Source: Magallana gigas
Lineage: Eukaryota
DNA length: 64,000 nucleotides
Assembly (NCBI RefSeq): GCF_963853765.1
Contig: NC_088853.1
Span: 53,258,001-53,322,000 of the forward strand
Direction of reading: 5' to 3'
Under the pieces are notes generated by a model that did not search any database, was not told the origin of the DNA, and was given only the letters and a program-made list of their open reading frames with translations. The translations under genes were made by a program, and so were the position numbers. Positions 4,388 to 64,000 of this stretch are shown piece after piece. How positions within the stretch are numbered: the stretch's first letter is position 1; every line of letters begins with the position of its first letter.

Positions 4388-4447
4388 GGAGAGCCCAGCA
4401 GTCCAAGGCAGCTAAAGGCTAAGTCCATCTAGCCGAGAAAAACCAAC

Positions 4448-4486: not shown

Positions 4487-4551
4487 TATTTATTATAATG
4501 CAAATAGAAATCAAATATGAAACACCAGTCACACTTCCCTCATACACCAAC

Positions 4552-5181: not shown

Positions 5182-5224
5182 ATAAAGGTGATGTACGATT
5201 TACATCATTTTGACTTGGAACACC

Positions 5225-39666: not shown

Positions 39667-39740
39667 AGTAGTATAAGCCGCCTCGCTGGCCGGGTCAACT
39701 GAGTGCACTTTTCAGAGTTGACCCGGCCAGCGATGCGGCT
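39667..39740. repeat. Maverick left terminus with 25-bp-arm hairpin
   Basis: AGTAGT 39667-39672; arms 39676-39700 and 39716-39740 with one mismatch; 15-nt loop. Confidence 0.85.
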
Positions 39741-40009
39741 GAAAATCTAGCTCCCTGAGATTTTAAGCTAATAATGCGGGGTGACCAATCTAAAGTAAGC
39801 ACTTGATCGATGTTTATAGTTGGCGCATCATAGATCCCGATTTATTCAATGATTTTTCCCTCCTTGCATAATGAAATAATAAAAAAGCGAATAAACAGTG
39901 AACATTGGTTTATTGAGAAATGTATGAAAATAAAAACAAGTATGAAATAACACTGAAACAATTCAAATTTACATGAAATAACACTGAAATAGTTCAATTA
40001 CACAAAAAG

Positions 40010-40636: not shown

Positions 40637-40685
40637 GTCTGTTTAATGTCAGAGCAAGACTGAGGGAAAAAGCAGCGATGTGCTA

Positions 40686-41030
40686 CTTTATAAATCTTAT
40701 GCAGTCTTGTGCACGAGGCTCTAAAAATAGCAATTTTTTCTTAAAATAGCATTTTTGCTATATACTAAATAGATCCGATGCAATAGATATTTTAAAAATA
40801 GCACATTTCTAAAATTGGCTATCATTTTTTTCCATATTTGCTGCACGCGGCTCTAAAAATAGCTAATTTTTTCTTCTAAAATTAACAATTTTTTATCTTA
40901 TTAATAGATCCTATGCAATATCTAATTAAATAATGAAATAGCATATATATTGTTTAAAAAACAATTGTTTAAAATAGCATATATTCATTTCTAAAAATAA
41001 ATCTGTTTTCATTTCCCTTTATGTATAAAA
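40686..41030. promoter_or_regulatory. Divergent promoter region with two TATA boxes and repeated YTA(A/T)4TAR (MEF2-consensus) motifs
   Basis: TATA boxes near 40690 (minus) and 41024 (plus); CTAAAAATAG at 40721 and 40853, TTAAAAATAG 40792, CTAAAATTAA 40876, CTAAAAATAA 40991. Confidence 0.5.
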
Positions 41031-41066
41031 AGCGTGTTCGATCGAAGCACTTGAAGAGAATTGATC

Positions 41067-44000: not shown

Positions 44001-44807
44001 TAGACCCCGAGTACAGATGTCAACAATCGGATTCAGATCGGTGTCTGACGGGAACATGGGTAACCACAGAACTACAGAAAGCGGTTGAAATTTGATCACA
44101 TTTACGAAATCTGGCATTTCCCTCAAAGCAGTGAGACCTTGTTCAAAGCTTATATCGACACCTTTCTTAAAATCAATCAAGAAGCTTCAGGATTTCCACC
44201 CGACTGTGAAAGTAAAGAACAGAAACAAGCATACATACATGATATTTACCAAAGGGAAGGTATCATGTTAGATTTGCTAGAAGTCGAGAAAAACCCAGTC
44301 AAACGCACTATAGCTAAACTGTTTTTAAACTGTCTGTGGGGGAAATTCGCTCAAAGAATCCAGCTACCGAAATCTCGATACCTGACAGAGGAAGCAGAAT
44401 TTCAACAATTATTACAAGATACCAGCTTAGAGGTCAAAGGGGTAGAACTCTTACAAAATTTGGAGGATCCTAACTCTGACATGATATTGATCAATTATGA
44501 GGAGAAAAAAGAATTCGTGGAAGAATGTCCCTTTGGTAACGTGGTGTTAGCCTGTTTCACCACGGCTCATGCACGATTACATTTGTATGAGACATTGGAA
44601 AAACTGGGAGAACGTGTGTTATATTTCGATACAGACAGTATCATTTATCAACATGAACAGGGGGAGTTTAATCCTACAACTGTCAACAGTTTAGGAGGAT
44701 GGACTGATGAATTAGACGGGGGTCACATTATCAAGTTTATGTCAGGGGGCCCAAAGAATTATGCTTTTGAAATAGACTGTGGAAACATTGTTTCAACTGA
44801 AACATGA
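41067..44807 (+). pseudogene. polB: Protein-primed family B DNA polymerase (pPolB) with Cys-rich N-terminal region and endonuclease-like insert; disrupted and 3'-truncated
   Basis: YFDFEC, AHNFKGYD, FIDS.NF, VDGYD...YEFHGCYWHGC, YGGRT, YVDVCSLYP, KLFLNCLWGKF, YFDTDS, GGPKNY; stop at 42456, frameshifts ~42845 and ~44090. Confidence 0.95.
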
Positions 44808-45472
44808 ATTTACCATGGTGGTAGCAGGCCCTTCTAAGTCGGGAAAAACTGAATTTGTTAAAAAGCTAGTAGAAAATACTCATTGGATCTCCCCATCCCC
44901 CGAAAAAATCATCTGGTGTTATCGAGAATGGCAACCAGCCTACGAATCTCTTACAACATCGCGTAAAGTTTATACGCAATATTCCCGAAGATGATGAGAA
45001 ATTGGTAGCAGATATCGAGACTCGACACCTCTTAATTTTTGATGATATGATGGGAGGCAGGGCTATCGAATCTATTGTGGATTGGTTTACAAGAAAAGCC
45101 CATCATCGGAATACTAGTGTTATTTACATTACTCAAAATGTATTTGATCGAGCAGCTCAACATCGCACTATTAGTTTAAACGCTCATTATTTAGTCTTGT
45201 TTAAAAATCCTAGAGACAAGTCTCAAATTGTCGTGTTGAGTCGACAATTAGATATGCCACATTTAATCTCGGCCTATCATGATGCCACTCGAATACCCCA
45301 CGGGTACCTGATTGTGGATTTAAGCATGCCACATTTAATCTCGGCCTATCATGATGCCACTCGAATACCCCACGGGTACCTGATTGTGGATTTAAGCCCT
45401 CAGACCCCCGATGAATTACGCCTGAGAAGTCACATGTTTCAGACCCTTACAGTGTATATGCCTAGAGTATAA
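44790..45472 (+). pseudogene. Packaging ATPase (FtsK/HerA, A32-like), 5'-truncated and frameshifted
   Basis: GPSKSGKT, LLIFDD, HHRNTSVIYITQN; frameshift ~44960; 72-bp in-frame duplication at 45254-45397. Confidence 0.92.
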
Positions 45473-45510
45473 ATATTAGAGTTTACATATACCCAGAATC
45501 ATTTGAAATC

Positions 45511-46398
45511 ATGACTGGAAAGAAGTTACTACACACATTACGGCGCTTACAACATGAACGAGATCCTGAGAAACGCGCGGAAATTATTGAGCTGGGGCGA
45601 AAAGCCTTAATGAAATGGTTTTTAACCGGGGCTAAAAATTTATTGAAAGGAGTCATTCCTATCAATAAACAGACACAGCGTTTCATTGATAAACATCGTG
45701 AGGATTTAAGGGTCATTGCCAATAAAAAGGTCAATGATGATAATAGAATAAGAGCTATTCTGAAACGAGGTGGGGCTGGATTTATTGGAGGAGTCATCAT
45801 TCGTCATTTATTGAAATGGAATTTGGCCAAAGCCCGAACAGCTAAACCAAGAAAAAAAACCCAAGGACGACGACTCAAGAGTGTGATAGGAAAAGTACTC
45901 AATTCCAAGGCTCCTAAACTGAGACAGTTACCCCAGTGGATGGTAGACATAGGGAAGGTTTCCTCACGCAAAAGGAAAGCTCCTAGAAAAAAGAGATCTC
46001 CCAGGAAAACCTCTCGGAAAGGACAAAAACTGATTGTAAAACTTCCTCCAAGACAGAAAAAGCCTCCTGAACAAGTTCCTTTGACCCAGCCTTCCCCCAA
46101 TACCACATTAGCCATGGCTCAAATGAAAATGAATAGAGCGATGGCAGGGCCAATAGGGAGTCAAAGAACGCCTGATATTCAATCCAGTGTGTTTCCCAGA
46201 ATTAAAGTTCTTGTTCATCACATCCCGAGATATTCCTCATTGTTTAGTAAAGTGACAGGTTTCAGTCCGTTACAAGACCCAGATAAGAAGAACAAGAAAG
46301 GAAAATATGAATGTCGCTACTGTCCCATGGAATTTAAACTGAAAAAATCCAGAGATCAACACGAAAAAACTACTCATCTTGGCTATGCCCCTCCTTAA
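45511..46398 (+). CDS. Maverick protein with conserved NLLKG-type N-terminal domain, basic linker and C-terminal C2H2 zinc finger
   Basis: AKNLLKGVIP; Lys/Arg-rich middle; CRYC-x12-H-x4-H at the C-terminus. Confidence 0.8.
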   Translation: MTGKKLLHTLRRLQHERDPEKRAEIIELGRKALMKWFLTGAKNLLKGVIPINKQTQRFIDKHREDLRVIANKKVNDDNRIRAILKRGGAGFIGGVIIRHLLKWNLAKARTAKPRKKTQGRRLKSVIGKVLNSKAPKLRQLPQWMVDIGKVSSRKRKAPRKKRSPRKTSRKGQKLIVKLPPRQKKPPEQVPLTQPSPNTTLAMAQMKMNRAMAGPIGSQRTPDIQSSVFPRIKVLVHHIPRYSSLFSKVTGFSPLQDPDKKNKKGKYECRYCPMEFKLKKSRDQHEKTTHLGYAPP

Positions 46399-46449
46399 AA
46401 AAGTATAAAAACCCTCACAAGCTAGATATAGCTATCATTGTGAACAAAG

Positions 46450-46812
46450 ATGGGTTCAAACCAGAAGAAAAAGAAAAAGAACAAAGCCTGCAGTTGTGAA
46501 TCTCGACTAAAACCTCATTTACCGATATTACAATTATTATCGATGCCTAAATATTCATCAAAATTAAAAAATGACGTTTTAAAGCATTGTTCTAATGACT
46601 GTATTTTAAAGATTTGTGAGATTGCTTACAACCTCTTAAAAGGTAATGTACCACTAAAGTCGTCTCAGAAGATAAAACTCGCGCCTCAGAAACACATCTT
46701 GAGGCGCCTCGTTCAACCACAGTCAGTACAGAAACGCAGACGAACTTTATTATTGAATCAAAAAGGAGGTGTTTTCCCAGTCATTCCCCTAATCCTCAGT
46801 TTACTGTCTTGA
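46450..46812 (+). CDS. Conserved small Maverick protein ending in QKGG plus hydrophobic tail
   Basis: ICEIAYNLLKGNVPL...LRRL...LNQKGGVFPVIPLILSLLS. Confidence 0.8.
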   Translation: MGSNQKKKKKNKACSCESRLKPHLPILQLLSMPKYSSKLKNDVLKHCSNDCILKICEIAYNLLKGNVPLKSSQKIKLAPQKHILRRLVQPQSVQKRRRTLLLNQKGGVFPVIPLILSLLS

Positions 46813-46816
46813 AATC

Positions 46817-47635
46817 ATGAGTCGTAAAATGGTGTTAGTTCCGGAAGCAATGTTACTAGAATTGAAAGGTAAATTGCCTAAATCTCCCGAATTTCAAGCT
46901 ACCATTGGCTTAGGACATCAGTTAGACCATATTCAAGGGAGAGAAGATTTAAACCCAGAAGAAAAAGTAGCCCTCTATGGTCATCAATTACATCGTTATC
47001 GGAATTATTTACAACAAGCCCGTGATCAAGGAAAGGAGAGGACATTTACAACACCATTACCTAGCGCAGAAAAAGATAAAGAGGCAGTCGAAGATGATGG
47101 GGCTGCTGCTGATGTTGCTGCTGACCCAAGTTCCTCAGAACTAGAAGAACAGGTGATGAAAAGTGTAAGCAAACAGATGCAAAAGAGAGCAGGACTTCTA
47201 TTAGATCACCTCAAAAAAACTAAAGTCTTAAAATGGAACTCCGATGGAGAAATAAGTTATCGAGGAAAACGCATACCCCAGTCTAATATCGTTGATCTGG
47301 TAACTAATACAATGAGAACTAAATCCCGTAGAGCATTTCGCTCTCCGATCGGCATTGACGAATTTGCTCAAGCCTTGAAAGAAACCAATGTGCCGACGGA
47401 TTACCTACAGAATCCAAACATTATAAAAGCCATGCAAAAGCCTGGAAAAATCAGTACCCCTAAACCCCTTCAAGATGAAAAAGACGATAATGACGACGAT
47501 ACTGGGTTTCAGGAAGCTTTTACGTTTACTACACCACAAGCTTCTCCCTTCTTTATGACGCCAAAAGTATCAAAGACAGTAAAAAAGAGAGGAAACGCAC
47601 AAATCTTAAATTGGGATAAATTGGGCAAGAAATGA
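46817..47635 (+). CDS. Conserved Maverick hypothetical protein
   Basis: MSRKMVLVP start; LKWNSDGEISYRGKRIPQSNIVDLV block typical of Maverick core ORFs; uninterrupted 272 aa. Confidence 0.75.
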   Translation: MSRKMVLVPEAMLLELKGKLPKSPEFQATIGLGHQLDHIQGREDLNPEEKVALYGHQLHRYRNYLQQARDQGKERTFTTPLPSAEKDKEAVEDDGAAADVAADPSSSELEEQVMKSVSKQMQKRAGLLLDHLKKTKVLKWNSDGEISYRGKRIPQSNIVDLVTNTMRTKSRRAFRSPIGIDEFAQALKETNVPTDYLQNPNIIKAMQKPGKISTPKPLQDEKDDNDDDTGFQEAFTFTTPQASPFFMTPKVSKTVKKRGNAQILNWDKLGKK

Positions 47636-48735
47636 AGAAAAAGAAAAAAAAATTAGAAGACATATTACGAGAGATTTATTATGATCCTAAGACTGGATAT
47701 GGAGGCGTACAAGCCCTATACCGTCAAGTACGTGCTAAGGGGTATCCTATATCACTTACGGATATTAGAAAATGGTTAAAAGAACAAGAAACATATACTC
47801 TGCATAAACCCATTCGTCGGAAATTTAAGCGACAACAAACTCGAGTGACCGGTATCGATGAGCAATGGCAATTAGACTTAGCAGATGTATCACAGTTAAA
47901 GAAAGAGAACGAGGGTAATACCTTTTTACTGTGTGCTATCGATGTACTCTCAAAATATGCTTGGGTGGTGCCATTAAAGCAAAAAACTGGGAAGGAAATG
48001 ATACGAGGATTACAACAGATCAGTAAACAAGACGGGCGACAACCCGTTCGCATTCAGTCGGACAAGGGGAGGGAATTCACAAACAAGGAGTTTTTACGCG
48101 CTTTTAAATCCATTCATTTCTTTACCACTCGCAATGCAGAAACAAAAGCAAGTATCGTGGAGCGCTTTCAACGCACACTTAAAGCTCGCATGTGGAGATA
48201 TTTCACCCGTCATAAAACTCGCCGATATCTTGACATCTTACCGGATCTTGTGTTCGCCTACAATCACTCGTATCATCGCAGTATAAAAAGAGCTCCAGCT
48301 GATGTGAATGCCTCTAATGTATTACAAGTGTGGAAAAATCTGTATAAAAAAAATTCATCTACAACTTTCTATACTCCTAAATTTCACAAAGGTGACAGAG
48401 TGCGCATCAGTAAAGCTAAACGCACTTTTGAAAAGGGATATCTGCCTAACTGGACCAGAGAGTTATTTACGATTTCTCGTCGAGTCCAGGAAGCTGTTCC
48501 ATACAGATATAAAATACAAGACTCTCATGGAGAAGAATTAGAAGGAACATTTTACGAATCAGAAATGCAAAAAGTCATAAAAAAAGACGATGTATATGAA
48601 GTGGAGGAAATATTAGACTATAAAAAGCGGCGAGTAGGAAAAAAAATCATAACTGAAATCAAAGTGCGTTGGAAAGGATATCCTCCTAGCTTTGACTCAT
48701 GGATTCCTCAAACAGATCTCCTACTTCCCAAATGA
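47632..48735 (+). CDS. int: Retroviral-like (rve) integrase with C-terminal chromodomain, intact
   Basis: WQLDLAD, IDVLSKYAW, QSDKGREF, VERFQRTLK, GYLPNWT; YEVEEIL...VRWKGYPPSFDSWIP. Confidence 0.96.
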   Translation: MKKKKKKLEDILREIYYDPKTGYGGVQALYRQVRAKGYPISLTDIRKWLKEQETYTLHKPIRRKFKRQQTRVTGIDEQWQLDLADVSQLKKENEGNTFLLCAIDVLSKYAWVVPLKQKTGKEMIRGLQQISKQDGRQPVRIQSDKGREFTNKEFLRAFKSIHFFTTRNAETKASIVERFQRTLKARMWRYFTRHKTRRYLDILPDLVFAYNHSYHRSIKRAPADVNASNVLQVWKNLYKKNSSTTFYTPKFHKGDRVRISKAKRTFEKGYLPNWTRELFTISRRVQEAVPYRYKIQDSHGEELEGTFYESEMQKVIKKDDVYEVEEILDYKKRRVGKKIITEIKVRWKGYPPSFDSWIPQTDLLLPK

Positions 48736-48947
48736 GTGATCAATGGAAAATGTTTGGTGAAAAGATTCCTAGAGCTGAAATTGTGTATTTTGCTCAACTT
48801 CTGATCTGCCTGATATTAATAATCGCTTGTATCGTCATGTTAGTCTTACATGACTCTAATCGAGAATATTGGATGATTTGTCTTAGTTCCACCGTGGGTT
48901 ACATTATGCCCAGTCCTACTCTCCAACTCAAACCAGAATCTGCATGA
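48732..48947 (+). CDS. Small two-transmembrane-helix protein
   Basis: ATG overlaps the integrase TGA (ATGA); YFAQLLICLILIIACIVMLVL and YWMICLSSTVGYIMPSP. Confidence 0.7.
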   Translation: MSDQWKMFGEKIPRAEIVYFAQLLICLILIIACIVMLVLHDSNREYWMICLSSTVGYIMPSPTLQLKPESA

Positions 48948-49070
48948 AAAAAAGTCACGTGATCATTTTTCCATCTTAAATATGAAGTGCAGCACTAGTC
49001 ACTGACTTATTATTAGCGTGAGCGCTGAGATCAAGCTGCATGGTTTTTTGTGATCTGAGACACACCTAAG

Positions 49071-49391
49071 ATGAATGAAATACAGTACCGGTGGAAAATT
49101 ATAGATCCTCAGGGAGTCCTTAAGGGAGAATGGATGTCTACTAAACAGAATTGTTTACATGATTTCATGCAGAATCCTCACGTTCCTCAGGAAGAGAGAA
49201 AAATCTACTTATACAAAAGAATTCCGATTCCCGCTGGAAAAAGATATTTCCGGATGATTGGCAAAAGTAAATATGAACAATTTCGATGGAAAGTCAAATG
49301 TCAATGGAATGTGTTTCACCCTTCAAAAAACCACGAACCTGCATGGACTCTTATCGAGGGAGACTGGACAGATGATTTCAAAAAGTTCTAA
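49071..49391 (+). CDS. Hypothetical Maverick protein
   Basis: 106-aa ORF with ATG start inside the element; no recognised motif. Confidence 0.45.
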   Translation: MNEIQYRWKIIDPQGVLKGEWMSTKQNCLHDFMQNPHVPQEERKIYLYKRIPIPAGKRYFRMIGKSKYEQFRWKVKCQWNVFHPSKNHEPAWTLIEGDWTDDFKKF

Positions 49392-49816
49392 AGACTTTCA
49401 TGAGACGATTACCAAAGGTTATGATTTTGTGGACTCCTGTGTGCCTTACATGCGGAGACCATTTCCGATTAAAGTAAAGCGGGGGAGATCCAAGAGTGTG
49501 TGACTGGCTAAAAACAAAAACAAAACAGCATAATTAGTGATTTTTTGTCATTCAAAAAATATTAAAGAATGTGTTCTTTGTTTTTTCTGTTTTGAAATAA
49601 ATATATGTGTATAAAAAAGTGTGGTTATTAATGTCAAATTTTGATATGTAGTTATGGTTCAGAATATAATTTTTTTTTAAAAATGACTAAATATTTCTAG
49701 GTTTAAAAAAAAAAAAAAAAAAAATAGATGAATATTGGAGGGTATATTATTGTCAAACTAAATAAAGGTATAAATAGAGGGGTTTAGAAAATAATTGTTT
49801 CATTGTAATTATCAAT

Positions 49817-50836
49817 ATGGCTGGAAGTGATGGGTTCTATTTGACCTTACCCAGTGATGGGTCGATGGAGGCTTTTCCACAAAATACGGTAGCTCAGTTT
49901 AAAACGTTGTTACCTCAGACAGTCGATTTAACAGATGGAGAATGGCAAATGGGTTTGACTGAAATGATGTACGGGAGTTCTGTTAAAAACATTTTATCAA
50001 ACGAATCCTATTTTGATATTTTAGTCACACAAAACTTCAAGGCATTTGTGGATGATCCCGACATTTTTAAAATCAATCGTTTTCAGATGAAAGAAATGAA
50101 TACTACACGTCTGTCTAAACTTGACCCACTAGTAGACTGGAAATATTCTTATTTGGCACGCGATGAGAGAGCTGCAAGACGAAAAGTTAAAATTGAGGAA
50201 ATTAAAAATAAAAGAGTGAAAATTTTTCGAATTCAATTTCGTTCTGGTCCTTATGTACACCCCAAGGCGTTAATCTCTGAAATCAATGAGGGTCTTAGTT
50301 TAAGCTTGAAAAGAATCTGGGAAACCATGGGTCATCCAGAACAGAAGAGTAACATGAAACTAGTGTACTACGAAAATTTTGATCGGATTGAATATCAGTA
50401 CAACGGAGAGCTGCTCCGAACTAAAAACCCCTTTAGTGTTCGCTTCCCAGTATCTCTAGCTTTAAAATTGGGGTTTGGAACAAAGGCCTTCAACACAAAT
50501 GATGAGAGCATGACAAAGTGGATCAATGTGACCTATTTAGCTCCAAACACGATCGATTTGTACGAGAATTTGAAACAGATGTACGTGTATTGCGATGTGG
50601 TAGAACCTCAGATGGTGGGGTCTAATGCTTTGAAATTACTAAGAGTCGTTCCCGTAACTCACAGTACTCACGATCACATGCAAGCTAAATGGGAGCCTGT
50701 GAGGGCCGAATATTTGAAATTGAGTAAGAAGCATTTCGATACCATCGAAATACAGATCAGAACTCCGTTAGGCATCGTGATGCCCTTTATAAGTGGAAAA
50801 AGCATCTTAAAACTTCATTTTAAAAAACTTTATTGA
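49817..50836 (+). CDS. Minor capsid protein (penton, single jelly-roll), intact
   Basis: FYLTLPSD...FPQNT..F...LP....L..GEW.MGL; YVYCDVVEPQMVG...LLRVVP; FDTIEI.I...LG..MPF..GK....LHF. Confidence 0.9.
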   Translation: MAGSDGFYLTLPSDGSMEAFPQNTVAQFKTLLPQTVDLTDGEWQMGLTEMMYGSSVKNILSNESYFDILVTQNFKAFVDDPDIFKINRFQMKEMNTTRLSKLDPLVDWKYSYLARDERAARRKVKIEEIKNKRVKIFRIQFRSGPYVHPKALISEINEGLSLSLKRIWETMGHPEQKSNMKLVYYENFDRIEYQYNGELLRTKNPFSVRFPVSLALKLGFGTKAFNTNDESMTKWINVTYLAPNTIDLYENLKQMYVYCDVVEPQMVGSNALKLLRVVPVTHSTHDHMQAKWEPVRAEYLKLSKKHFDTIEIQIRTPLGIVMPFISGKSILKLHFKKLY

Positions 50837-50993
50837 AACAGATGGATCCCTATAGCTTGACTTTTTCCATCTTGGTTGCTGTTGTTACCTGTATAATGTG
50901 TTGCATAGAATGTTTTTACACCTTCTTTCATCACTACTAAACCTCTCTATATAAGGACTCGAAACGCACCATTCTTAACATTTAAAAAAAAAC

Positions 50994-51119
50994 ATGGTGT
51001 ACCCCCAATCACCGCGGCGAAGAAGACGCCAGAGAGGACGTGGATTCTTTTTACCCATCGTTGCTTCACTCATTGCGAGTGCCGTAGGCTCTCAGCTTGG
51101 GAAAGGGAGAGGAAGATGA
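50994..51119 (+). CDS. 41-aa Arg-rich micro-ORF with amphipathic/hydrophobic helix (not in the supplied track)
   Basis: MVYPQSPRRRRRQRGRGFFLPIVASLIASAVGSQLGKGRGR; TATATAA ~45 nt upstream. Confidence 0.65.
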   Translation: MVYPQSPRRRRRQRGRGFFLPIVASLIASAVGSQLGKGRGR

Positions 51120-51203
51120 GGAGGAGGAGGAGGGGGAAAAAAGTCGAGACTTAGAAGAAAAAAGTATAAAAAAAGGAATCATTAAACAACTTCCTCAGTC
51201 GTC

Positions 51204-52064
51204 ATGGATTATCATCGCGGATTATTACGTCAACGAGGACACGGATTTTTGGGACCACTTTTAAAACTAGGACTGCCCCTAGTCGGGAGTGCCGTGACTC
51301 CCCTTCTCGGCGATTTGGCAGGGGGGTTGGTAAAAAAAATTAAACATCGTCAGAAAGGAAGTGGTTTTGTTACAAATGCTTGAAAAACGGCTGCTAAACA
51401 TGGTAATTTGGTCACCGGGAATGCCGCCATAGACAGCCTTAATAATAAAGGAACATTTATGCAAGGGCTTAGGCGGCACGGTACCCAAACACTTGGAAAC
51501 GTAGGGGTCCATGCCGTGGAACAACAACTGAGACGAAATCTACCCATCCTCCGTGCTCCTATCGTCGGATCTGTACTTAATAAGACACTGATGCCTGACG
51601 TCAGGAGAAAAGTGGGAACTGCTATCGATAATACCGTCAATAAGATCTTAGGACAAAGAGGTAAAGGTTTCGCCACTAAACTAATCAGAACGGGAGCTAA
51701 ACACTTGCCTCACTTAGTGCCGTGTTGCCTTGCAACACGGCACTAAGGCCCTCATGAAAAAGGGAGTTCAACAAGCCCCTCGCTTTTTACGTAAAGGTGC
51801 ACATGACTTAGTGAAAACGGGAACGCAACAGGCTTTACAGAGCGCTGCCCAGGCAGGCTTCGATGTCTTAAACCAAAAAGGATCTTTAAAACAAGTCGTA
51901 AAGTCTCGCGGTTTACAGGCCGTTTATAGGACCGGAAGGACTATGAAAAAGAAAAACTTACCCCCAAGCAAGGGATTGTTCTGGCCCGGGGAGGCCCCCA
52001 CAAAAGAAAAAGAACTAAGACACCCGCAGCTAAAAAATCTCGAACGGCAGATATCTTTGATTGA
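51204..52064 (+). pseudogene. Basic virion core/cement-type precursor with repeated Q-x-G-x-G-F motifs, disrupted
   Basis: QRGHGF, QKGSGF, QRGKGF; basic C-terminus ending KKSRTADIFD; one stop and two frameshifts. Confidence 0.7.
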
Positions 52065-52146
52065 ACCTATAAAAAGGCGGTCCCCAACCTTACCCTACAC
52101 ATTTTTACCCATTGTATCGTTAGTCACACATCAACCCCCCTTCTGG

Positions 52147-53554
52147 ATGATGCACCGAGAATCATGAGTGTGTGGGATGGACAGTTTAGAACTGTTTCAA
52201 GTCCCTGCCACGAACGTAGCTTTAGAAGAATCAAAATGGGTAGAATATTACCCTGTTTCCAGTACCCTGCAGTCTGATACGGCCCCTATTGAATTTGATA
52301 TTAAAGGACAGGGAGATGAATATCTCGATCTCTCACAAACCTATCTACAACTCTGTTGTAAATTCACCAAATCCGATGGTACTAATTTAACGGGAGCCTC
52401 GACTCCCGTCAATAATATCTTACATTCTCTGTTCACGGAAATCGACGTGAGTCTCAATGGAAAAGTCATTTCCCCCGGAACGGATACCTATCCGTACAAA
52501 GCCTACCTGGAGAAATTGCTCTCATACAAACCGAGAACTCTAACCAAGCAAATGAAGTCTGTGGGAGAAAGATACCGCTGAACACATGGAAGATCTTAAT
52601 TATGCTGCCGCTGAACTTACGACTAACACATTTGATGTTAGGGCAAAAGAGGATGATGAGGATGCCAAAGAAATTGAGATAGATGCAGCGGACCTGGTCT
52701 TGAGTTACCCTGCAGGATCCGGAAATGTAGGGTTAAGTAAACGTCACAAGGCCGTAGACGACAGTAAAAAAATTATTTTAATGGATCGACTCTATATTGA
52801 TTTGTTTCAACAAGATAAATTTCTACCTAACGGAGTAGACCTTCGCTTGAGATTCAATCGCGCGAAATCTGATTTCTACATGATGACGGCCGCCTTAAGC
52901 AGTGGAAAAGTAAAAATTGAGAATATGTTGTTGTTGGTGAGAAAAATCAAGCCTACTCCAACCGAGTTAAATGCCATCAATCAGCGCCTGAATGCTGAAA
53001 CAGCAAAATATCCCCTAAGACGGGTCGAAGTAAAAACATTCACTATCCCCACGGGCACTCAATCTAAAATTAGCGATCATCTCTTTCAAGGACAGATGCC
53101 GAAACGAGTGGTGTTGGGGTTTGTAGCCAATGCTGCCTTTAACGGAGATTCAACCAAAAACCCCTTTAATTTCAAAAACGCTAAAGTGAAAAAGTTAGAA
53201 ATCAGCATCAACGGCGAGAGTATGAGCACCAGACCATTTGAGCCCGATTTTGAGAACAATCTGTACCTGAGATCTTACTTGAGTCTGTATCAAGGGCTCG
53301 GAAAATTAGGGGAAGATTGGGCTCCGGACATTACCTTGGAAGAGTATAAAAAGGGATACATACTTTGGTGTGTTGATTTCACTAAAGACCAGGAAGCGCA
53401 GCTCGATAAGTTTCATCTGATCGAAACGGGGAACTTGAGAATCGAAGTTCAATTTGCAGAAAACACAGCCGAAACGCTTAACTGTTTAGTGTATGCCGAA
53501 TTTGACAATTTGTTGGAAATCAACAAACAGCGAGAAGTGAACATAGATTACTAA
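52147..53554 (+). pseudogene. Major capsid protein (double jelly-roll), disrupted
   Basis: [74 protein letters not shown]; stop at 52165 and frameshift ~52560. Confidence 0.93.
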
Positions 53555-53576
53555 AACGACAAAAAAAGACAAACTT

Positions 53577-54089
53577 ATGGATACAGGGCAGTTACGAGCC
53601 GTGTTATCACAATCCTTAGGCAGTTCTTTTGCGGGCGTCTATCCCAGAGATTTAATTCCCCATCAAAAAAGACCGTACGAGAAAGCGATCGTCGTGAATA
53701 CAGATCCTCACGATCGACCAGGAATGCATTGGGTGTGCCTTTATTTGAATACTCCCATCATTGAATACTTTGATTCATACGGATTACCCCCCTTACACCA
53801 TGAAATTAGAGATTTTATAGCTCGACATGCTCAACAATGGGACTACAATCGGAATCGTTATCAGGATTACTCTACGGACGTCTGTGGACAATATTGTGTG
53901 TATTATTTACAACAACGCCATCGAGGGAACATGAATGCTTTAGACTGGCTTTTTCCATTCCCAAAGACGTCGAGGTTATCCCCCCTTCAACGGGATCATT
54001 ATGTAGCTGAGTGGTTTAGAGAGACTTACCGTAAAGCTAAAAGAAATCAAGGACAAACTTGTCAATGTTTCTGGCAAAATATGTTTTAA
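53577..54089 (+). CDS. Adenain-like cysteine maturation protease, intact
   Basis: VNTD....GMHWV, YFDSYG, YQD....VCGQYC give the H-D-Q-C catalytic set. Confidence 0.95.
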   Translation: MDTGQLRAVLSQSLGSSFAGVYPRDLIPHQKRPYEKAIVVNTDPHDRPGMHWVCLYLNTPIIEYFDSYGLPPLHHEIRDFIARHAQQWDYNRNRYQDYSTDVCGQYCVYYLQQRHRGNMNALDWLFPFPKTSRLSPLQRDHYVAEWFRETYRKAKRNQGQTCQCFWQNMF

Positions 54090-54406
54090 TATTGTTGTTG
54101 ATGTTTCGTTGTGTTCATTCTAATTAAAAAAAAAATATATGTTTTTTCTGTAGCATTTAAGAAATATAATATATCTGATCTATGATTGGATATCTGATTT
54201 ATTATCATAAAATTGCATTGGATTTATTTTTAAAATGATATCACACTACTGTTTAAGGAGTTACTATTATTAAATCAAAAACGGTTTGATTACAAGGTAC
54301 GATGTCATAATGATATCATAATCTAATATTAGAAATTTAATATCTTATATAAATGAGCGCATCGCCAGTTTTATTTCATCCATCTTGTTCTGACATTTCA
54401 AACAAC

Positions 54407-55016
54407 ATGGAAATTATGGAAGTAGCCAACGGAGGGGAAATGTGTTCCATCTCTACGAACTTCTACGCCACCGCTTTTTGAGCCTTACATTAAAACCGAG
54501 GAAGAAGAAAAAACCATCCTAAGAAGCCTGAGACAGGAATATTTGGGTCTTGTAGAAAGTCTTATGGCAGCGGAGGATATAGTCTTCGAGAAATTGAACG
54601 CCAGTAAACCACCTAGCCGTATGGCGCTCTTTTTTTCAACACAAATAAATGCAATGGAACTAAAGGAAATGAAGACCGTGCGCTCTCTTCAGAAAGGGAT
54701 AGAAAAGCACCGCCAGTGGACCACCGATGATGTAGTGCGCAATGGAGAAGAGTACATTAAAGAAGTCTGCTTGATGAATGAGTGCGTTCAAAGAGATATA
54801 ATTGCTTCATTCGAACATAATGAGTGGAAAATCTATCTACCTCAGGAAAAAAATTCCGAGTCCTTTCATTTTCAAACCATACTACGTGAGTGCCTTAAGG
54901 ATGTAGCTACATGGTTGAGAGACTACCTGTTTATGAGCATGACAACTCTGAGGAATCTCAGCAGGAAAATTTATTTGGAGGCGCTTGTAATCCCTAAAGA
55001 AGAGCCTACCAATTAA
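54407..55016 (+). pseudogene. Hypothetical Maverick accessory ORF with 5' frameshift
   Basis: TATATAAA near 54347; ATG 54407 in one frame, long frame open 54426-55016 in another. Confidence 0.45.
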
Positions 55017-55550
55017 GGGCAAAATTCGGTACGGGGTGACATCATGTGACGTTTAATTGTGAATATTTAAACTGTTAATTGTTGTTAAAAAATTATAAGT
55101 GTATATATAATAGATTCTCACTTATGTATGCATTTGTGATTGTGTTATAGTTCAATAAATTTATCAAAAAATATGAAATCAATTTATTTTTTCTTTAAAA
55201 AAGTAATTGATATAAAAAGAATATGTGAATTGATATTTATATACCAAAAATCATATTACATGTGTAAAAAAAATGAAAACAAAATTGTGAACTGGTGTTT
55301 TAAAAATTTGAAGTAGCTAACATAGATGCTACATTTTTTCCTCCACTAGTGTATTGCTGATTCTTTGGTCACTTTGTGGAATATAATATGAGATCAATGA
55401 ACTTATTCTTCAATTGATCTCATATTGTACTCACAAAAATATCACAAATTTTTCTCTGGTATATTTTTGATCTGCTGTTGTGATATGGTCCCATTGTAGA
55501 ATATTATACATAATCATTGAACTTAATTTTTCAATTAATCACACATAATA

Positions 55551-55850
55551 TTAAACAAAGACATCACCAATTTCTTTTCTTTCATCCGTTGATATGTTGA
55601 TCCGCTGATGTGATATGGTCCCTTTCTGGATCATCATTTGGGTACTGTATTTATTCATAACAATGTCCACATGATGATCCACAAAGACATAATCAAAAAG
55701 ACGTCCCTGTGATACTGCTATGACTGGAACTGAAGAGCCGCTAAAAAACATTGAAACAAACAAACGAAGAATTTTAGTGTCTTCGTATGACATATCTACA
55801 GGTTGTCTGTTATTTTGTAAAAACAAGCAACCTATAGATACATCATACAA
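55551..55850 (-). CDS. Hypothetical ORF within a locally duplicated segment
   Basis: 99-aa ORF; 55780-55900 is imperfectly repeated at 55960-56070. Confidence 0.3.
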   Translation of the reverse strand: MYDVSIGCLFLQNNRQPVDMSYEDTKILRLFVSMFFSGSSVPVIAVSQGRLFDYVFVDHHVDIVMNKYSTQMMIQKGTISHQRINISTDERKEIGDVFV

Positions 55851-56162
55851 AGAAACATCAAGAGTCTCAGGGTTCGCTGAAAAAAAAAATAAGATAAAGT
55901 TGAAATAATTCTCTCTAAAAAAAAAAACAAAACATTAAACAATTGAAGAAATGTTGGTATCTTCCTATGACATATGTACAGACTATTTGTCATATCTTAA
56001 CAAGTAATCTATAAATATATCATACAAAATAACACCAAGAGTCTCAGGGTTCGCTGAAAAAAAAAAGTAAGATCAATGAAACAATGATTAAACAATGAAA
56101 TCGAATGAAAAACAAAAAACATTTAGACAAAACAAACAATTCGTTTCTCTGCTATAATAGAG

Positions 56163-56223
56163 GCATCTTTTCTAAAAATCTGGTGGCCCTTAAAAGGGCC
56201 GTGGGGGTTGGCTTTAAAAAGCC
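56163..56223 (-). terminator. Histone-type 3' end: imperfect stem-loop, canonical stem-loop and downstream element
   Basis: Minus strand reads GGCTT TTTA AAGCC (56210-56223), GGCCCT TTTA AGGGCC (56185-56200), ACCAG, then GAAAAGATGC (56163-56172). Confidence 0.9.
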
Positions 56224-56231
56224 CTACTGAT

Positions 56232-56624
56232 CTACTGATGTAGAATCCTCGGCAGCTGGCTAGTCGACATTCTAGCCGTTTGCCGCTGGCGGCTAGGTCG
56301 TGGCACGGGGAGGATGGCTGGCGATGGGGGTGGTGTCATATCCCTGAGAGGAACGGGGATAATTGCCGGCGGCCTGTAAGGGTGCTCCCTTCTCCTCCTC
56401 CTCCTCCTGAGGGGACTGGCCTGGGCAGGCGGTGACTGGGGGGCTGGAGGGTCTGCCGCTGCTTGGGGCTGCTGCTCTGCCGATGGCGGGGGCTGCTGCT
56501 GCTGGTGTGCCGCCCGCATTCCTCGGACGTCTAGTTGGGAGATCCGCCCGATCTCGATCTCCGCTATGGTCCGGTAGTGCACCTCCCCGTTACAGTCATT
56601 CCTTATGTGTTTAAACAAATCCAT
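56232..56624 (-). CDS. 130-aa Pro/Arg-rich protein with C-terminal histone H3 tail mimic carrying Met at the K9 position
   Basis: Intact ORF; SRQRQTARMSTSQLPR (56247-56294) aligns to H3 ARTKQTARKSTGGKAPR. Confidence 0.85.
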   Translation of the reverse strand: MDLFKHIRNDCNGEVHYRTIAEIEIGRISQLDVRGMRAAHQQQQPPPSAEQQPQAAADPPAPQSPPAQASPLRRRRRRREHPYRPPAIIPVPLRDMTPPPSPAILPVPRPSRQRQTARMSTSQLPRILHQ

Positions 56625-56717
56625 TGTGAATTAAAACATCCTTTAATCTGCAGTTACATCTTGACTCTACCCTTGTTTATTACCAGTAGATCCTACCCTG
56701 ATGAGTGGCCTACCCTG

Positions 56718-56863
56718 ATTGGACAAATCAAAATACAGAATGTTCTAGAACGCATACTAATTAGTTTAAGGTGGTAAAATATAGCTGGCTTTTCTAGAAA
56801 GTTCTAGAAATCGATGACAGTAATGTACGGATTCTTATGAAGTCATAGTTTTTTATGACGTCA
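56718..56863 (-). promoter_or_regulatory. Stress-type promoter: CCAAT box, two perfect heat-shock elements and a CRE/ATF site
   Basis: ATTGG 56718-56722; GAA-TG-TTC-TA-GAA 56738-56750; TTC-TA-GAA-AG-TTC-TA-GAA 56792-56809; TGACGTCA 56856-56863. Confidence 0.75.
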
Positions 56864-57090
56864 CTTTGAACTCCCTGATGTTTAATAACTCAGTTTTTTA
56901 ACTACACACTAAAATACATGATATTATACCTGACTTTAATAAAAAAAAAAATCGGGAAAAGCAGAACATTTTGTTAATAGCAAATACATTTTTAATTTGA
57001 ATTAGAATTTGCACACTATAAACAACATAATATTTTGTTATGTTTAATAATTTTAATCGATGAATACAGTGAAATACACACATACGAAAT

Positions 57091-57339
57091 TCAAGTTCTC
57101 TGTTGTTTGATATAGGTCCATAACAATTTTCTCAATTTACACATAGTTCTTACACGGTCTACGGCCACGAACATCCACGGACTCCTCCGGTCTTCGGGAG
57201 GTAAAACATATATTTGATCCTGTGCAGTATCAAAAGTCACTCGTTTTCCTTTAGATTTTTGAGACTTAATAACTTCATCCAACCGAATTGAATGGTTGTA
57301 ATACGAATCGCTTCTATCTGTTGATGAAGTCGATGACAT
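57091..57339 (-). CDS. ICP34.5/DP71L/GADD34-like PP1-recruiting protein
   Basis: KRVTF (RVxF) followed by EDRRSPWMFVAVDRVR, matching the R.GPW...A.DR.RF motif of this family; first ATG at 57339. Confidence 0.75.
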   Translation of the reverse strand: MSSTSSTDRSDSYYNHSIRLDEVIKSQKSKGKRVTFDTAQDQIYVLPPEDRRSPWMFVAVDRVRTMCKLRKLLWTYIKQQRT

Positions 57340-57534
57340 TTTATCCACTTTTTACTTCTGTCGGGGGATAAGATAAACTCCAGGATATCTTGATGATATT
57401 CTGTAGAAGAAACGCCAGTCAGTTTAGGTAAAACTGCTTTTTAACTGCATCGGCGATGTAAGCAATTATCTAAGCAAAGTGAGCAATTAACTTGGGTTTT
57501 TTTTTTTTTTGCAAAGTAACTACTCTATTAACAA

Positions 57535-57614
57535 TTTTTAACTCACCTCAGCTGAAGGCTGAAGTGAGCTTTTCTGATCAAAATTTGTCTTGTCGTCGTT
57601 GTAAGCTTTTCACA

Positions 57615-57647
<33 letters not shown>

Positions 57648-58610
57648 AAAGTTTGTGGTTTCAAATATGTTCAAATGAAGGGCCATGCCCTTTTTCAGGG
57701 GAACATAATTAAGAATAATTAAGAATATGTTGGCATTTTTAAAAAATCTTCTCAGAAGTCACTCGGCCAGAAAAACTAAAACTTGTGTGGAAGCATCCTC
57801 AGATAGTGTACATTGAAGTTTGTTCAAATCATGGTCCCCGGGGGTATGGTTGGACTACAATTGGGGGTCGAATTCTTGCATAGGAATATATAGAGAAACA
57901 TTATAAAAATCTTCTTCTCAAAAATCAATTGGCCTGAAAAGCTGTGACATAGGAATATATCATATCAGGATATTGAATCATCCTCAGGAAGTGTAGATTC
58001 AAGTTTGTTGAAATCAGGATCCACAGGGGTACATGTAGGATGGGGCCACAATGAGGTGGGGGGAGTCAAATTATATAGAGAAAATTCTTTTTAAAATCTT
58101 CTTCTCAAAAACCAATAAGTCAGAAATTCTGTTACTTGTGTAAAAGCATACTGAGGTAGTGTAGATGCAAGTTTGACCAAATCATGATCCCCAGGAGTAG
58201 GAATGGGCCACAATTTAGGGGTTATCAAATTTTTAAATAGTAATATATAGGGAAAATTTAAATCTGTAGGAAATCGATCTTCAACTCAAAAACCAATGGG
58301 CCAGAAAAGCTGTAACTTGTGTAGTTAGGTAGGTTACATTCAAGTTTGTTCAAATCATGATTTGGGGGGGGGGGGGTTGAATTATTCCATAGGAATTCTT
58401 TCAAAGTCTTCTTCTAAAAAACTGAAACAAAAGGAATTTCGTGTTTATAATGAATAGAATATGAGTGTGCAGAACATTTTAAAGATCTTTTTAAAGAATA
58501 TATACTTTAATTACTATATATTAAAAATATTTTTTTTCTGGTACCATGAAGGTGATTTGTTCAGAGTGGTGGTTGCTCAGCTGAGCGATGTGGCCCCTGG
58601 GCCTCTGGCT
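57535..58610 (+). repeat. Helentron/HINE-type repeat with ~165-185 bp internal monomers
   Basis: 5' CTCACCTCAGCTGAAGGCTGAAGTGAG; recurring AATCTTCT...GCCAGAAAA...AAGTTTG..CAAATCATG; 3' GCGATGTGGCCCCTGGGCCTC hairpin. Confidence 0.7.
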
Positions 58611-58772
58611 TTAATAATTATCTGTCTTGCTAAAGAATGTATTTTGTACAACTATGTGTGTTTCATTCTGCTTGTAACATGGATCACAGCATAACTGCAT
58701 GATGCTGCATGTGGAAGTCAATATATGTTATACATACTTGATTTTCATCAACAAGTTTGCCATGTACCTTAA

Positions 58773-59088
58773 GGTGGTATGGGACACTTCCATGTTGTGA
58801 CGTATTGTTCATCGAAATAAACAATAAAATAAAGTGAAATTATGCAAGTATTTTCTTTCCCAAAATGGTCACCTAACTCCGTAGCGCAGTGGGTTAGAGG
58901 GTTTACTACAAACTGTAAATCATGAGTTCGAATCCTGGTTTGGGTTTTACAATTTCTACCTTTTCAAATATTTTTAAAAGCTATTTTATGGTTAAATATT
59001 GTAAAATTTGAAAATTCTAAACCCGTGAAATTTTTCAATTGCATAGTACTTTAATCAACATTAATATCGACAGATGTCTCATACCACC
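58773..59088. mobile_element. Kolobok-like MITE (TTAA target, GG termini) containing a tRNA-like segment
   Basis: TTAA|GGTGGTATGGGACAC ... GATGTCTCATACCACC|TTAA; A box TAGCGCAGTGG 58882-58892 and B box GTTCGAATCC 58926-58935. Confidence 0.7.
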
Positions 59089-59152
59089 TTAAATTACTTT
59101 TGATTAGCAAATGAATCGTGCATATTTTAATTGGACAATCTTTTTCATGCAG

Positions 59153-62027
59153 ACGGGTAGAGGTGTACCTGTCTTAATTCCAAATGAAACAAAGAAAGTG
59201 CTTGAATATCTGAGTAACCCAGTTGCCAGACAAAGAGCAAACATAAGACCAGAGAATAACTACATGTTTGCCAATACTGGTGAGTGATAACTATAGTTTT
59301 ATTTTAATGAACAAAAATAGGAACAAACAATCCAAAGACATACGTCAATGTACAAATAACTGTCTACCTTGTCAGTGATCATGATTATTGGTTATACAGG
59401 TCGGACTGTTGTTCGAGCCGGGGATTCACTCCATCAAGTGAAATTCAGAAGTGAAGTTGGATTGAGATTTCCAGAGAGAATTTACGCTAATAACTTAAGA
59501 AAACACATTGCAACAATTGCCCAGGTTTTATTTCATTTTTTTTTTTCATTTGAAATGTTATTTATATCATCTCCACCTGATTCTGATAAAAGAAGCATTT
59601 TAAAATTCAATTATTTCAAAGAGTAATTTCTAATTTTTGTTTAGGCCCTGAATCTGAATGATACAGAAATGAAATGGATATTCAATCACCTCGGACACAC
59701 ACAAAAGGTTCATAATCTTGTGTATCGACAAACATCAGGGATGATTGAACGTCTAGACATAGCAAAGCTGATGTTTTATACAAGAATACAATGTTGTTGG
59801 AAAATTTCAAAACCGGAAGCTTTCTGAGATTCAGTTTATTCTATTCTATTATTCTTATTTTAAAACAATTTCATGTTTGTGTAGAAATACATTATTAAAG
59901 TGTATTATGTAAAGTGTTCATTCTTTGTAGAACTTGGAATACTTGCGATCAAGATCAAGAACAGCAAGGTAATTACATTGATCCAGTCAATCCTCATTAT
60001 CTCAAACTCGATGGGACCAAGTAAAACTCTCAAGATACTGGAGGGTGTAACATATTGAAGACAAATTACATACATATTGGGACTTTCAACTCGCTTTGAC
60101 ATATCTATGGTATTCAAGATGTAAAAATTTGATATAGCATGGTTCAATTGTATGTTAATCATTATATTATTCATAGCAACTGCTACTAGAGAAATCATAA
60201 AGAGTTCATATGGTATTTTTTTATTTGTAAATAAGTTGTCACACTAAAATAATGATTTTATGCTTGGATGACAAAATTAGTGAACTCATTATTTCTGACA
60301 TGTATATTGTATGTGAAAACACAAGTTGAGAAATTTTTATTTGATTTATGTTAGTGTGTTGAATCAGGTTCGTCAAGAAACATTTGACAATGAATACGTA
60401 TACCCTCTAATAAATGAAACCATACTCTAGTAGTAAAAGTCCACATTACTTGACAATGGGGAGTATATCAAGATAAAAGTCAGACTGCTCAGAAACTAAG
60501 TGCGTATGGTTTTCCGTAATATAAATTTGTATAAACCATTCAGTATTACAAAAATGAATGTAAAATTAAAAATTCCAACATCTAAAATATCATTGACAAT
60601 ATTAGATTTAAACCTAGTGTGATACCTTGCTGACCAAATTGAATACCCTATTGAGCAATACAACAAGCTATTGAAAACTCTACCGGTATTCTGTAATTCG
60701 GTGTAATTCTTTTTAAAAATCCAGATATGTAACAATTTTGTATGTTGTCATTATTTCATATAAAAAGTAACAATAAATACTGATGAGCAGAGGATTTTTT
60801 ATGAATTTAATTGCATGCAGATAATTCTTGGTTTACAGTATGTATTATTTTTAACATTGTTATTAATTTGTTTATTCATTAAACTAGTAATTTATATTGT
60901 TTTGCAGATATTGACAGTACTGCTGTTCAATCAAACAATGTTGATGATGGTATGTACAAGTTAATTCTGTAGGTTGTCTTATCAAAAAATGTTGATAACT
61001 TAAGACAGGAAACATTTTCATTGTGTATTCATGAACAGTAGCAGAGCACTTACTTAATATTTGCATTCAAAATTATAGCATTTGTAAGGTGCAAATAAAC
61101 ACCTTGACTTAAATTTCACATTCATTTGCTTAAATAGCTTGTTAAGATAGTATCTTACAGAATGTAAGAGTTAAACATAAGTATCTGGATTATCTGCCCA
61201 GCAATTAATTAAATCTCTTTGAATTTGTTAATGGGGTCTGCTCCAATGTTTTTTTTTTAAATTTATAGAATACCGGTAATTTTAATTCTTAAATTTGGTG
61301 ATGCATTTTTAAATTTATACCTAATGTTTTGATAAAAAAAAATTATACGTAATGTTAATCATTGGTTTTTTTGTTGTTAATTATTAAATACTTCATTCAG
61401 TGTACTAGAAATTTATAAAGATCATAATTTTCAAGAGTTAAGAGTGTGGGTGTTTGGATTGCTAAAAAGTTTTAATTCCCATAAAATTTTAATACTAGGG
61501 TTGTTGGGAAAGTTTGTGGACTTTTGTCATAACCTTTTTAGTTTGTCATAATCAAAATCCAAATTTGGTTGAAATCATATCTCTTTTTTCAGACATGGAC
61601 ATTGAAGAAGACTTTGTGTCTAGAAAAAAGGCGAAGAAATGTAAGTACCTGTATATGTTTTTTGCATTGAAATGGAATCATGGGTGTTAAAATGGTTAAA
61701 TACTCCTTTTGACAAGAAGAATGAGATTTTAAAAGCATAATTTAAGACATATGACCCCAGGAACAGATGTTCAGTACCCATAGGTAAAATGTAACTATAC
61801 TCTTTTTTTTGTAGCTGAAAGGGTCAGATGGTCACGGGATGAAGAAGATGAGATTAAAAAAATACTTCTCCCGTTATTTTGATGGGCATCTACAGAAGAA
61901 ATGCCCCTCAAGGGAGCATTGCCTTGATGCTCTTAAAAAAAGCAAAGAAAATGGTGGAGCAATTTTTAAAAGGAAATGGGAAACTTTAAAAAAAAAAGTG
62001 TCAAACATGTTGGTCAAACAAAACTAG
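59153..62027 (+). CDS. 3' part of a spliced Crypton-like tyrosine recombinase gene with C-terminal Myb/SANT-like domain (probably degenerate)
   Basis: Exons encode GRGVPVLIP, NNYMFANT, NNLRKHIATIAQ, HLGHTQKVHNLVYR and RWSRDEEDEIKKYF...CPSREHC. Confidence 0.7.
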
Positions 62028-63879
62028 ACTTACCCCCAAGTTGTCAAGATTCAAATATTAGATGGTTATGCAGTACTTTTATGCCCCTTGAACTTAGAGA
62101 AGATTTTTAAACATCTCAATTTCCAATCAATAATCAATAGAAATAAAAAATCTAAGATAGAATTTCATGTATGATCCATAATATGTTAAAGACTGATAAT
62201 AATAGCTTGAATTTTTGTCCATTTTGAGAAACTATTTCCTGATATATATTACATATCGGTTTCTCATGTATTTTCATGTCGTCTGCCCTCAGTGTAAGTG
62301 GTACATAAACATATTACTTAATCCAAAATCTACCTTCCTTCTGTCTGACAATTCTAGTAACATTGTCTGATTTTTTTTATTAAGAAATTCCAGTTTTAAT
62401 AGTGTTAACATTGTATAGTTTTATCTTAGTTATGCCCCTTGAACCTGGAAAAGGAAAGAAATCTTCTGTGCATAGAAATGTAAACTAAATGTGGCATTTG
62501 AAATTTTGGCTGCCTGCAGGGGTATTTCAGGCATTACAACTATCTAGTTTTTCCTTAGTTTTTGTAACTTAGTAATGGAACTTGACATTTGGTAATATTT
62601 TGGGTTATACTGTCATACAGGGGCTTGTATGCTAAAACAAAGACTGAAAAAAATTGAAAGATCATATTGAATTATATTTATTGTCTTGTTGCTTAGCTTG
62701 AAGTTTTAAGATGATTTAAAAAAAAAGCCTTTGGTTTTTGATTTCTTCTGATAATTGTTGTCCTTTTGTGGGTTATTTTGTTTGTTAGTGTGAGAGAGCA
62801 GTTTTCTGTAAATTTATTTTCTTGCAACAAATACTGTCAAATAAAGTTTACATTATTTCATATATGAAGCTTGTTTTCATTCAAAGATCGTTTTAACCAT
62901 GGAAAGCAAAAAAGAAACATGAACTTTTTGCACATGTTTAACTAGCAACTAAAAGTGATGACAAAAGAATGCAAAATATCTGTGAAATAGTATTCATCTA
63001 TCTTTTTGGAATGCCAGTGTTTGATAAAAAAGATTTACATATATACTTGCCTCTAATCAGACTTGAGAAAGAGTCAAGAAGACTTATTAAATGTCATAAA
63101 TTTGGAGGTGTTGAGATCTGTTAATTAGGAGTAAGTACACTATGGAGAATGAGAGGGCTTGTTTTGTCTATTTCCTAAGAATTCTAGCTTTTTTTCTATT
63201 AATAAGGGGTCAAAATAAAATTATTTTTGAAATGATGGTCATGTTTGACTTGTGTGCTAAGAGCCCAGGAATTCAACATACCGTAGTGAATTAAACACTA
63301 GATATAATTAAAGAAAATTAATTTAGCCTAGTAAAGTTATTTTTAATAAAGATATCTCAGAAATGTCCTATAAGGGAATTTATAAGGAAAATGACAAAAA
63401 ACAGATGAGTTTCAAAAATTTATTAGGAATTGTGTATTTGCATCAAAACCCAAATATATTAAAACACCTACCATTCAAGGCATCTTCCATTTGCTGATCC
63501 ATAAACAAACTGAAAGATAATTGACAAATCAAGCTCATAATGGTATTGTAGCATCTTTGAGTCATGATTTCCAAAAATATTTCGCTCCTGAAATATTTCC
63601 TAATTCGTGATTAATGTTTACATGACACATATGCTTCTATTTATTTTGTCATTATATAGTGTGTGGTCTTGAGTAAATTAACTGAATTTGAACTTAGTCT
63701 GTTTATACCAATTGACAGGCTGAAAATTTAATAGAATTATGAATTTGTTATTAATCTTGGGAACTGTTAATCTTATAATGCTTGCATGTTGATCCGTCCT
63801 TTAATTAAGAGGTAATTTACAAATAAAGCTCATAAACTATGAATGTAAGAACAATTTTGAATTGGAAACTATAATTAAG

Positions 63880-64000
63880 AGCTCTGAAACTCTTAAATCC
63901 TTCAACTCCTAATGTTTGTATGTTGGTCCGTCCGTCTGTCTGTCTGTCCGTCTGTAAACTTTTTACATTTTGAACTTCTTCTCTAAAACCACTTGACCAA
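63880..64000 (+). repeat. Start of another Helentron/HINE-type repeat, cut by the window end
   Basis: (GTCC/GTCT)n microsatellite followed by GTAAACTTTTTACATTTTGAACTTCTTCTC. Confidence 0.5.

Follow-up and report, generated by a model that had tools for sequence, protein, structure and literature searches.

[quoted passage not shown] SLBP binds the stem-loop, with U at loop positions 1 and 3 among the determinants of binding, U7 snRNP pairs with the downstream element, and the pre-mRNA is cut a few bases after the stem to give a nonpolyadenylated mRNA. H2A.X mRNA, which undergoes dual 3'-end processing (PMC7807067), is a precedent for a stem-loop that coexists with downstream polyadenylation. 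A link between this machinery and mobile-element transcripts is reported for U7 snRNA, which acts on HERV1/LTR12 elements through HDE-like sequences (bioRxiv 10.1101/2023.08.25.554787), but that case is repression in human cells and involves no SLBP-type stem-loop after a coding gene. Histone-tail mimics include the influenza NS1 tail, and Lys-to-Met histone peptides and proteins such as EZHIP inhibit histone methyltransferases. In the literature library we searched, which does not cover most subscription journals, we found no histone-type 3' end reported for Maverick/Polinton elements or adintovirus-like viruses and no paper linking transposases, Polintons, or Mavericks with the histone stem-loop, the HERV1/LTR12 study being the nearest item.

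We analyzed a 64-kb stretch of DNA (the window), in which an earlier note, made from the sequence alone, had described a nonhistone viral gene ending in a histone mRNA processing signal with a tandem second hairpin. The signal is where the note placed it, and the observation is confirmed. The features discussed here are as follows.

56232 to 56624, minus strand: gene X, a 130-amino-acid ORF ending in TAG (56232 to 56234).
56262 to 56282, minus strand: the H3-tail-like C-terminal motif of gene X.
56210 to 56223, minus strand: first hairpin, 14 nt, with a 5-bp stem and loop TTTA, 8 nt after the stop.
56185 to 56200, minus strand: GGCCCTTTTAAGGGCC, a canonical 16-nt histone-type stem-loop (6-bp stem, loop UUUA), 9 nt after the first hairpin and 31 nt after the stop.
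56180 to 56184, minus strand: ACCAG, the 3' flank of the stem and the expected (inferred) cleavage region.
56161 to 56173, minus strand: purine-rich candidate HDE, containing GAAAAGATGC at 56163 to 56172 with 12 nt between it and the stem; its core AAAAGA starts 13 nt after the stem.
56715 to 56724, minus strand: CCAAT-box 10-mer about 100 nt before the ATG, followed by a TATA-like AATAAA about 40 nt further on; candidate promoter.
57091 to 57348, minus strand: 85-amino-acid ORF upstream of gene X with a PPP1R15/GADD34-like PP1-binding motif.
40010 to 40636, minus strand: 208-amino-acid ORF with two CCHC zinc knuckles, on the other side of the Polinton core.
41061 to 54089, plus strand: core of a decayed Maverick/Polinton-like element.
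3400 to 4387 (approximate bounds), plus strand: broken GC-rich, Pro-rich gene with a C-terminal RING-like Cys pattern.
4448 to 4463, plus strand: second histone-type stem-loop of the window (loop UUUC).

A covariance-model search with Rfam, one of the checks proposed beforehand, matched Histone3 to 56159 to 56205 on the minus strand over the full model at 34.8 bits (gathering threshold of 34, E value of 2.3e-6), and this was the only family at gathering level in the 64 kb. The stem has G-C pairs at its two basal positions and folds as predicted, and the same 16-mer is the stem-loop of human H2AFX (PMC2413145, Table 1). The pattern GGCCCTTTTMAGGGCC, which allows A or C in the loop, occurs twice in the window with up to 1 mismatch, against 0.00 expected in 100 dinucleotide-preserving shuffles, the second copy being that at 4448 to 4463. 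A stricter scan of both strands (6 standard pairs, GG..CC, T at loop positions 1 and 3) found only these two sites. The 3' flank aligns to the ACC-A flank of the Rfam model, whereas the 5' flank is CCCAC, not the A-rich consensus, and is CCAAC in the relatives L007 and L008 (L numbers designate the contigs and loci compared with the window). Natural histone genes of the metagenome set described below also have AC before the stem, but the search pattern demanded it. As the score is only 0.8 bit above threshold, the weight of the case rests on conservation in relatives rather than on the score alone.

Gene X has no Pfam family and no solved relative, is mostly low-complexity and rich in Pro, Gln, and Arg, and has a G+C content of 62% in a region of about 30 to 35%. 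Its family is small and lineage restricted, with 11 proteins among 5.8 billion clusters, all from Logan assemblies, and 11 among 1.84 billion representatives. Codon-level comparison with relatives gave dN/dS values of 0.16 to 0.31, with dS up to about 1.2, and it is therefore a real coding gene under purifying selection. Full-length members of roughly 145 to 160 amino acids begin with a conserved N-terminal segment that the window copy lacks. The window copy is a 5'-shortened variant, missing about 290 nt at the 5' end of the coding region and starting at another ATG, and the same short form (protein P0001) exists in another data set.

We then examined the signal in these relatives. In L007, with a protein 46% identical to that of the window, the stem-loop is kept 31 nt after the stop and scores 40.8 bits, and in L008 (39% identical) it is kept at 34.1 bits, with one stem change that keeps pairing as G-U. 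In L136 and L137, which carry full-length copies, the 3' end is identical to the window. Other copies have lost the signal: L135, a close copy, has one extra base in the loop; L001, a diverged copy, has the stem-loop split by an insertion; and in the diverged copies L002 to L006 it is cut in the loop and joined directly to the 3' half of a CCHC gene like that at window 40010 to 40636. The signal is therefore dispensable for persistence of the DNA. From the stem-loop to about +130, the window and L007/L008 are about 92% identical, while the coding part is about 70% identical in DNA, so that the 3' noncoding region is held more tightly than synonymous sites, although faster, CpG-driven change in the GC-rich coding part may add to this contrast. 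Further downstream, the noncoding DNA at 55300 to 56160 holds tandem repeats of about 177 nt and about 130 nt and is 75 to 92% identical to L007 and L008, again more conserved than the coding sequence; other tandem repeats lie at 57736 to 58361 (about 185 nt) and 40709 to 40933 (132 nt). The first hairpin, which the note had taken as a tandem variant of the stem-loop, is real and is conserved as an A/U-rich hairpin of 5 to 7 bp with variable T and A runs. However, it has no Rfam hit of its own, and no model scores it as a histone stem-loop.

For comparison with real histone genes, we scanned metagenome contigs with a 21-nt pattern (stem-loop plus flanks), which gave 120 loci with 144 stem-loops. 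Fifty-three of these follow core-histone ORFs (H3, H4, H2A, and H2B), and three follow H1. Gene X with its flanks is 84 to 89% identical to the 3' ends of the natural H3, H2A, H2B, and H4 genes over 38 to 50 nt covering the stem-loop and the downstream purine element; it is equally close to all four and shares nothing significant elsewhere. In the 53 core-histone genes, the gap from the stop to 2 nt before the stem has a median of 27 nt (range, 15 to 59), compared with a stop-to-stem distance of 31 nt in gene X. A purine core occurs in 28 of the 53 genes at a median offset of 14 nt after the stem, against 3 after shuffling, while it starts at 13 nt in gene X and at 14 nt in the second window copy. 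Position and composition of the candidate HDE thus fit, with pairing to U7 inferred; Rfam searches found no U7 gene in the window. The CCAAT-box 10-mer before gene X is identical to one in the H3 promoters of L012 and L023, and CCAATCA boxes are common before both the histone genes and the nonhistone stem-loop genes of the set. On its own the 10-mer match is not significant (E value of 6), and this is suggestive only. Compared with histone mRNA 3' ends, the locus differs in that the upstream gene encodes no histone, an extra A/U hairpin precedes the stem-loop, and about 130 nt beyond it are also conserved. Compared with H2A.X, it has the identical 16-nt stem-loop, but it follows a mobile-element-associated gene and no nearby poly(A) signal is seen. 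Compared with the HERV1/LTR12 case, a full stem-loop plus candidate HDE follows an ORF.

The C terminus of gene X carries QTARMST, the best-conserved part of the C terminus across the family, whereas the natural H3 of L030 has QTARKST at residues 6 to 12 of its translation. The match is 6 of 7 positions, reached by 15 of 2,000 shuffles, and 7 of 10, reached by 4 of 2,000, with Met where H3 has Lys 9. The codons of the motif differ from those of H3 at most positions, and the motif therefore looks like mimicry rather than inheritance. A Lys-to-Met-type inhibition of H3K9 methylation remains a lead only, since the likeness is confined to 7 to 10 residues and no named hit came back from the PDB or Pfam; membership among histone-tail mimics cannot be claimed.

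The block of 13 kb beside gene X has the genes of a Maverick/Polinton in the usual order, several of them broken. It encodes a protein-primed PolB in four ORF pieces (Pfam DNA_pol_B_2), a packaging ATPase with one tandem duplication (60% identical to a gene of the related Polinton contig L130 with a faint Pox_A32 hit), an rve+chromo integrase, a capsid-sized gene in two pieces, assigned by size and position only, and an adenain-like protease whose relative P0056 carries PF00770. Gene X lies 2.1 kb beyond the protease, on the opposite strand from all core genes and convergent with the protease. No terminal inverted repeats were found with two methods, and no inverted repeat links 34000 to 41200 with 54000 to 64000. 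The ORF upstream of gene X has an RVxF-type motif and a following Trp motif, with best hits to PPP1R15B in the PDB (E value of 0.067) and to Pfam PP1c_bdg (E value of 0.012, below cutoff), and has its own ATTAAA 34 nt after the stop; it is linked to gene X in L002 to L004. The CCHC ORF beside PolB (Pfam zf-CCHC, E value of 3e-15) has its 3' half fused to the truncated stem-loop of gene X in L002 to L006, five runs of one project, so that the whole Polinton core is absent between them.

The second stem-loop of the window matches Rfam at 4443 to 4487 with 32.7 bits, just under threshold, carries the same GAAAAGATGC downstream, and matches the first over 55 nt at 82% identity by blastn. It lies about 60 nt after the RING-like gene (Pfam zf-RING_2, E value of 0.0072, below cutoff), which is broken by one in-frame stop and probably one frameshift, and sits between a Tc1-like DDE_3 transposase gene (about 2000 to 3049) and a second Polinton fragment (4579 to 5630). 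A search for repeats around it gave no clear result.

In the metagenome set, about 60 stem-loops follow nonhistone ORFs. Pfam searches found among these DDE_3 (Tc1/mariner) in L064, L113, and L067, with L060 and L057 clustering with L064 and L113 by similarity only; DDE_Tnp_4 (Harbinger) in L092 and L043; DDE_Tnp_1_7 (piggyBac) in L074, which has three stem-loops in tandem; DDE_Tnp_IS1595 (IS1595 type) in L048, with which L059 clusters, likewise by similarity only; MADF in L086; P2RX7_C in L033 and L096; GDSL-like in L071 and L046; and RING and C2H2 in L063. The transposase genes end 15 to 46 nt before the stem-loop (about 105 to 122 nt in L043 and L074). Eighteen of 20 such nonhistone loci tested reach Rfam's threshold, while L064 and L113 do not. 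In L064 and L067, long terminal inverted repeats enclose both the transposase and the stem-loop, so there the signal is part of the element. The L067 transposase is 40% identical to the one at window 2537 to 2995. Two unknown small-protein families, one with a C-terminal Cys motif, were found in L044, L045, L049, L079, L098, L099, L117, and L126. On some contigs (L079 and L099) they form two-gene units in which each gene has its own stem-loop and CCAATCA boxes at fixed distances (71 and about 136 to 141 nt before the ATG, and 220 nt in one family), like miniature histone clusters. None of the 120 loci carries Polinton genes, and in IMG/VR the stem-loop pattern gave no hits and gene X no relative.

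The note's interpretation, that a viral gene hijacks histone mRNA processing, is only partly supported: the nonhistone ORF and its conserved signal hold, but its viral nature is unproven. We favor, with moderate confidence, the reading that gene X is a real, fast-evolving gene of a mobile-element-associated accessory cassette and carries a complete histone-type 3' processing signal that selection has kept, most likely acquired as a short 3' module and not as a whole histone gene. In this view, SLBP would bind the stem-loop, U7 snRNP would pair with the purine-rich element about 13 nt downstream, and the transcript would be cut in ACCAG, giving a nonpolyadenylated mRNA whose translation and decay would follow those of histone mRNAs, high in S phase and in oocytes or early embryos. 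Our data establish the sequence, spacing, and conservation of the signal and its recurrence after other nonhistone and transposase genes, whereas SLBP and U7 binding, cleavage, lack of polyadenylation, and timing of expression are inferred from established knowledge of histone pre-mRNA processing, without RNA data. The recurrence suggests that mobile elements borrow the histone pathway to time their expression. If so, the exclusivity of this signal to histone genes would be broken, and selfish elements would have a simple mechanism to tie their expression to DNA replication or to the germ line. A further-reaching reading, which we consider unlikely but which is not excluded, is that in this animal lineage mobile elements of several classes, including Maverick-associated accessory genes and Tc1/mariner, Harbinger, piggyBac, and IS1595-type transposases, have taken over the complete cassette, their mRNAs being made and destroyed in step with histone mRNAs in S phase and in oocytes, and that gene X is an H3-tail mimic supplied together with new histones to blunt H3K9-methylation silencing of the element.

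It remains possible, though we hold this tentatively, that the cassette (PP1-binding-like ORF, gene X, and CCHC ORF) belongs to the host or to another mobile element and that the Polinton merely sits next to or inside it; this concerns ownership and is compatible with the mechanism above. Besides the strand and the missing terminal repeats, L002 to L006 carry the PP1-like ORF, gene X, and the CCHC 3' half contiguously without Polinton core genes, short contigs carry the gene family without them, the second stem-loop may belong to a Tc1-like element whose relative L067 has the stem-loop right after its transposase, and distant Polinton-like viruses of IMG/VR, found through their proteases, have no such stem-loop. 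On the other hand, L129, a related Polinton from an ENA metagenome (capsid-sized gene 82% and protease 65% identical), has at the same place, after its protease and a macro-like ORF, a different, convergent GC-rich, Cys- and Arg-rich gene (5180 to 5748, minus strand) followed by a decayed stem-loop, with the two basal pairs lost, and a similar purine element. This decayed copy was found by eye, Rfam giving no hit on the related Polintons L129 to L132, and other related contigs end too early to show this place. Moreover, the 132-nt repeats found next to PolB in the window lie upstream of the cassette in L002, and a PP1-binding-like ORF is the kind of accessory gene that large DNA viruses carry. 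Ownership by the Polinton is therefore plausible but unproven.

Less likely, the stem-loop is conserved but is not the main 3' end, transcripts being mostly polyadenylated further downstream as in dual processing of H2A.X, or the element serves another RNA-level role such as stability or localization. About 130 nt beyond the stem-loop are as conserved as the stem-loop itself, which processing alone does not require, and Logan contigs, which may or may not come from RNA, run well past it, but the purine element sits at the histone-like offset and resembles real histone 3' ends. No AATAAA or ATTAAA occurs for 577 nt after gene X, which is weak evidence and not significant, since about 1.6 are expected. 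The alternative raised in the note, that the whole gene descends from a captured H3 gene, is not supported and appears very unlikely. The tail motif, the 3' signal, and the CCAAT 10-mer are shared with H3 genes, but BLASTP against a natural H3 gave an E value of 0.97 without aligning the motif, and PDB searches with the protein, its family profile, and its C-terminal 26 residues found no H3 chain. In addition, no histone-fold remnant is seen, and BLASTP and blastn comparisons with natural histone genes from L012, L023, L030, L069, and L077 gave nothing beyond the 3' signal. A chance hairpin, or a stray 3' end left by a lost histone gene, might be suggested by the marginal score and the repeat-rich genome, but it is refuted by the conservation in L007, L008, L136, and L137, with none expected by chance, the 31-nt distance kept in relatives diverged to a dS of about 1.2, and no histone coding remnants.

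The rest of the window (1 to 39000) is dense in transposons, with an intact Tc1-like transposase ORF (24570 to 25598) and Harbinger-like ORFs (13066 to 13953 and 22019 to 22381) among others. A long A/T-rich perfect-arm palindrome at 7674 to 7740 gives spurious subthreshold hits to plastid and microRNA families on both strands.
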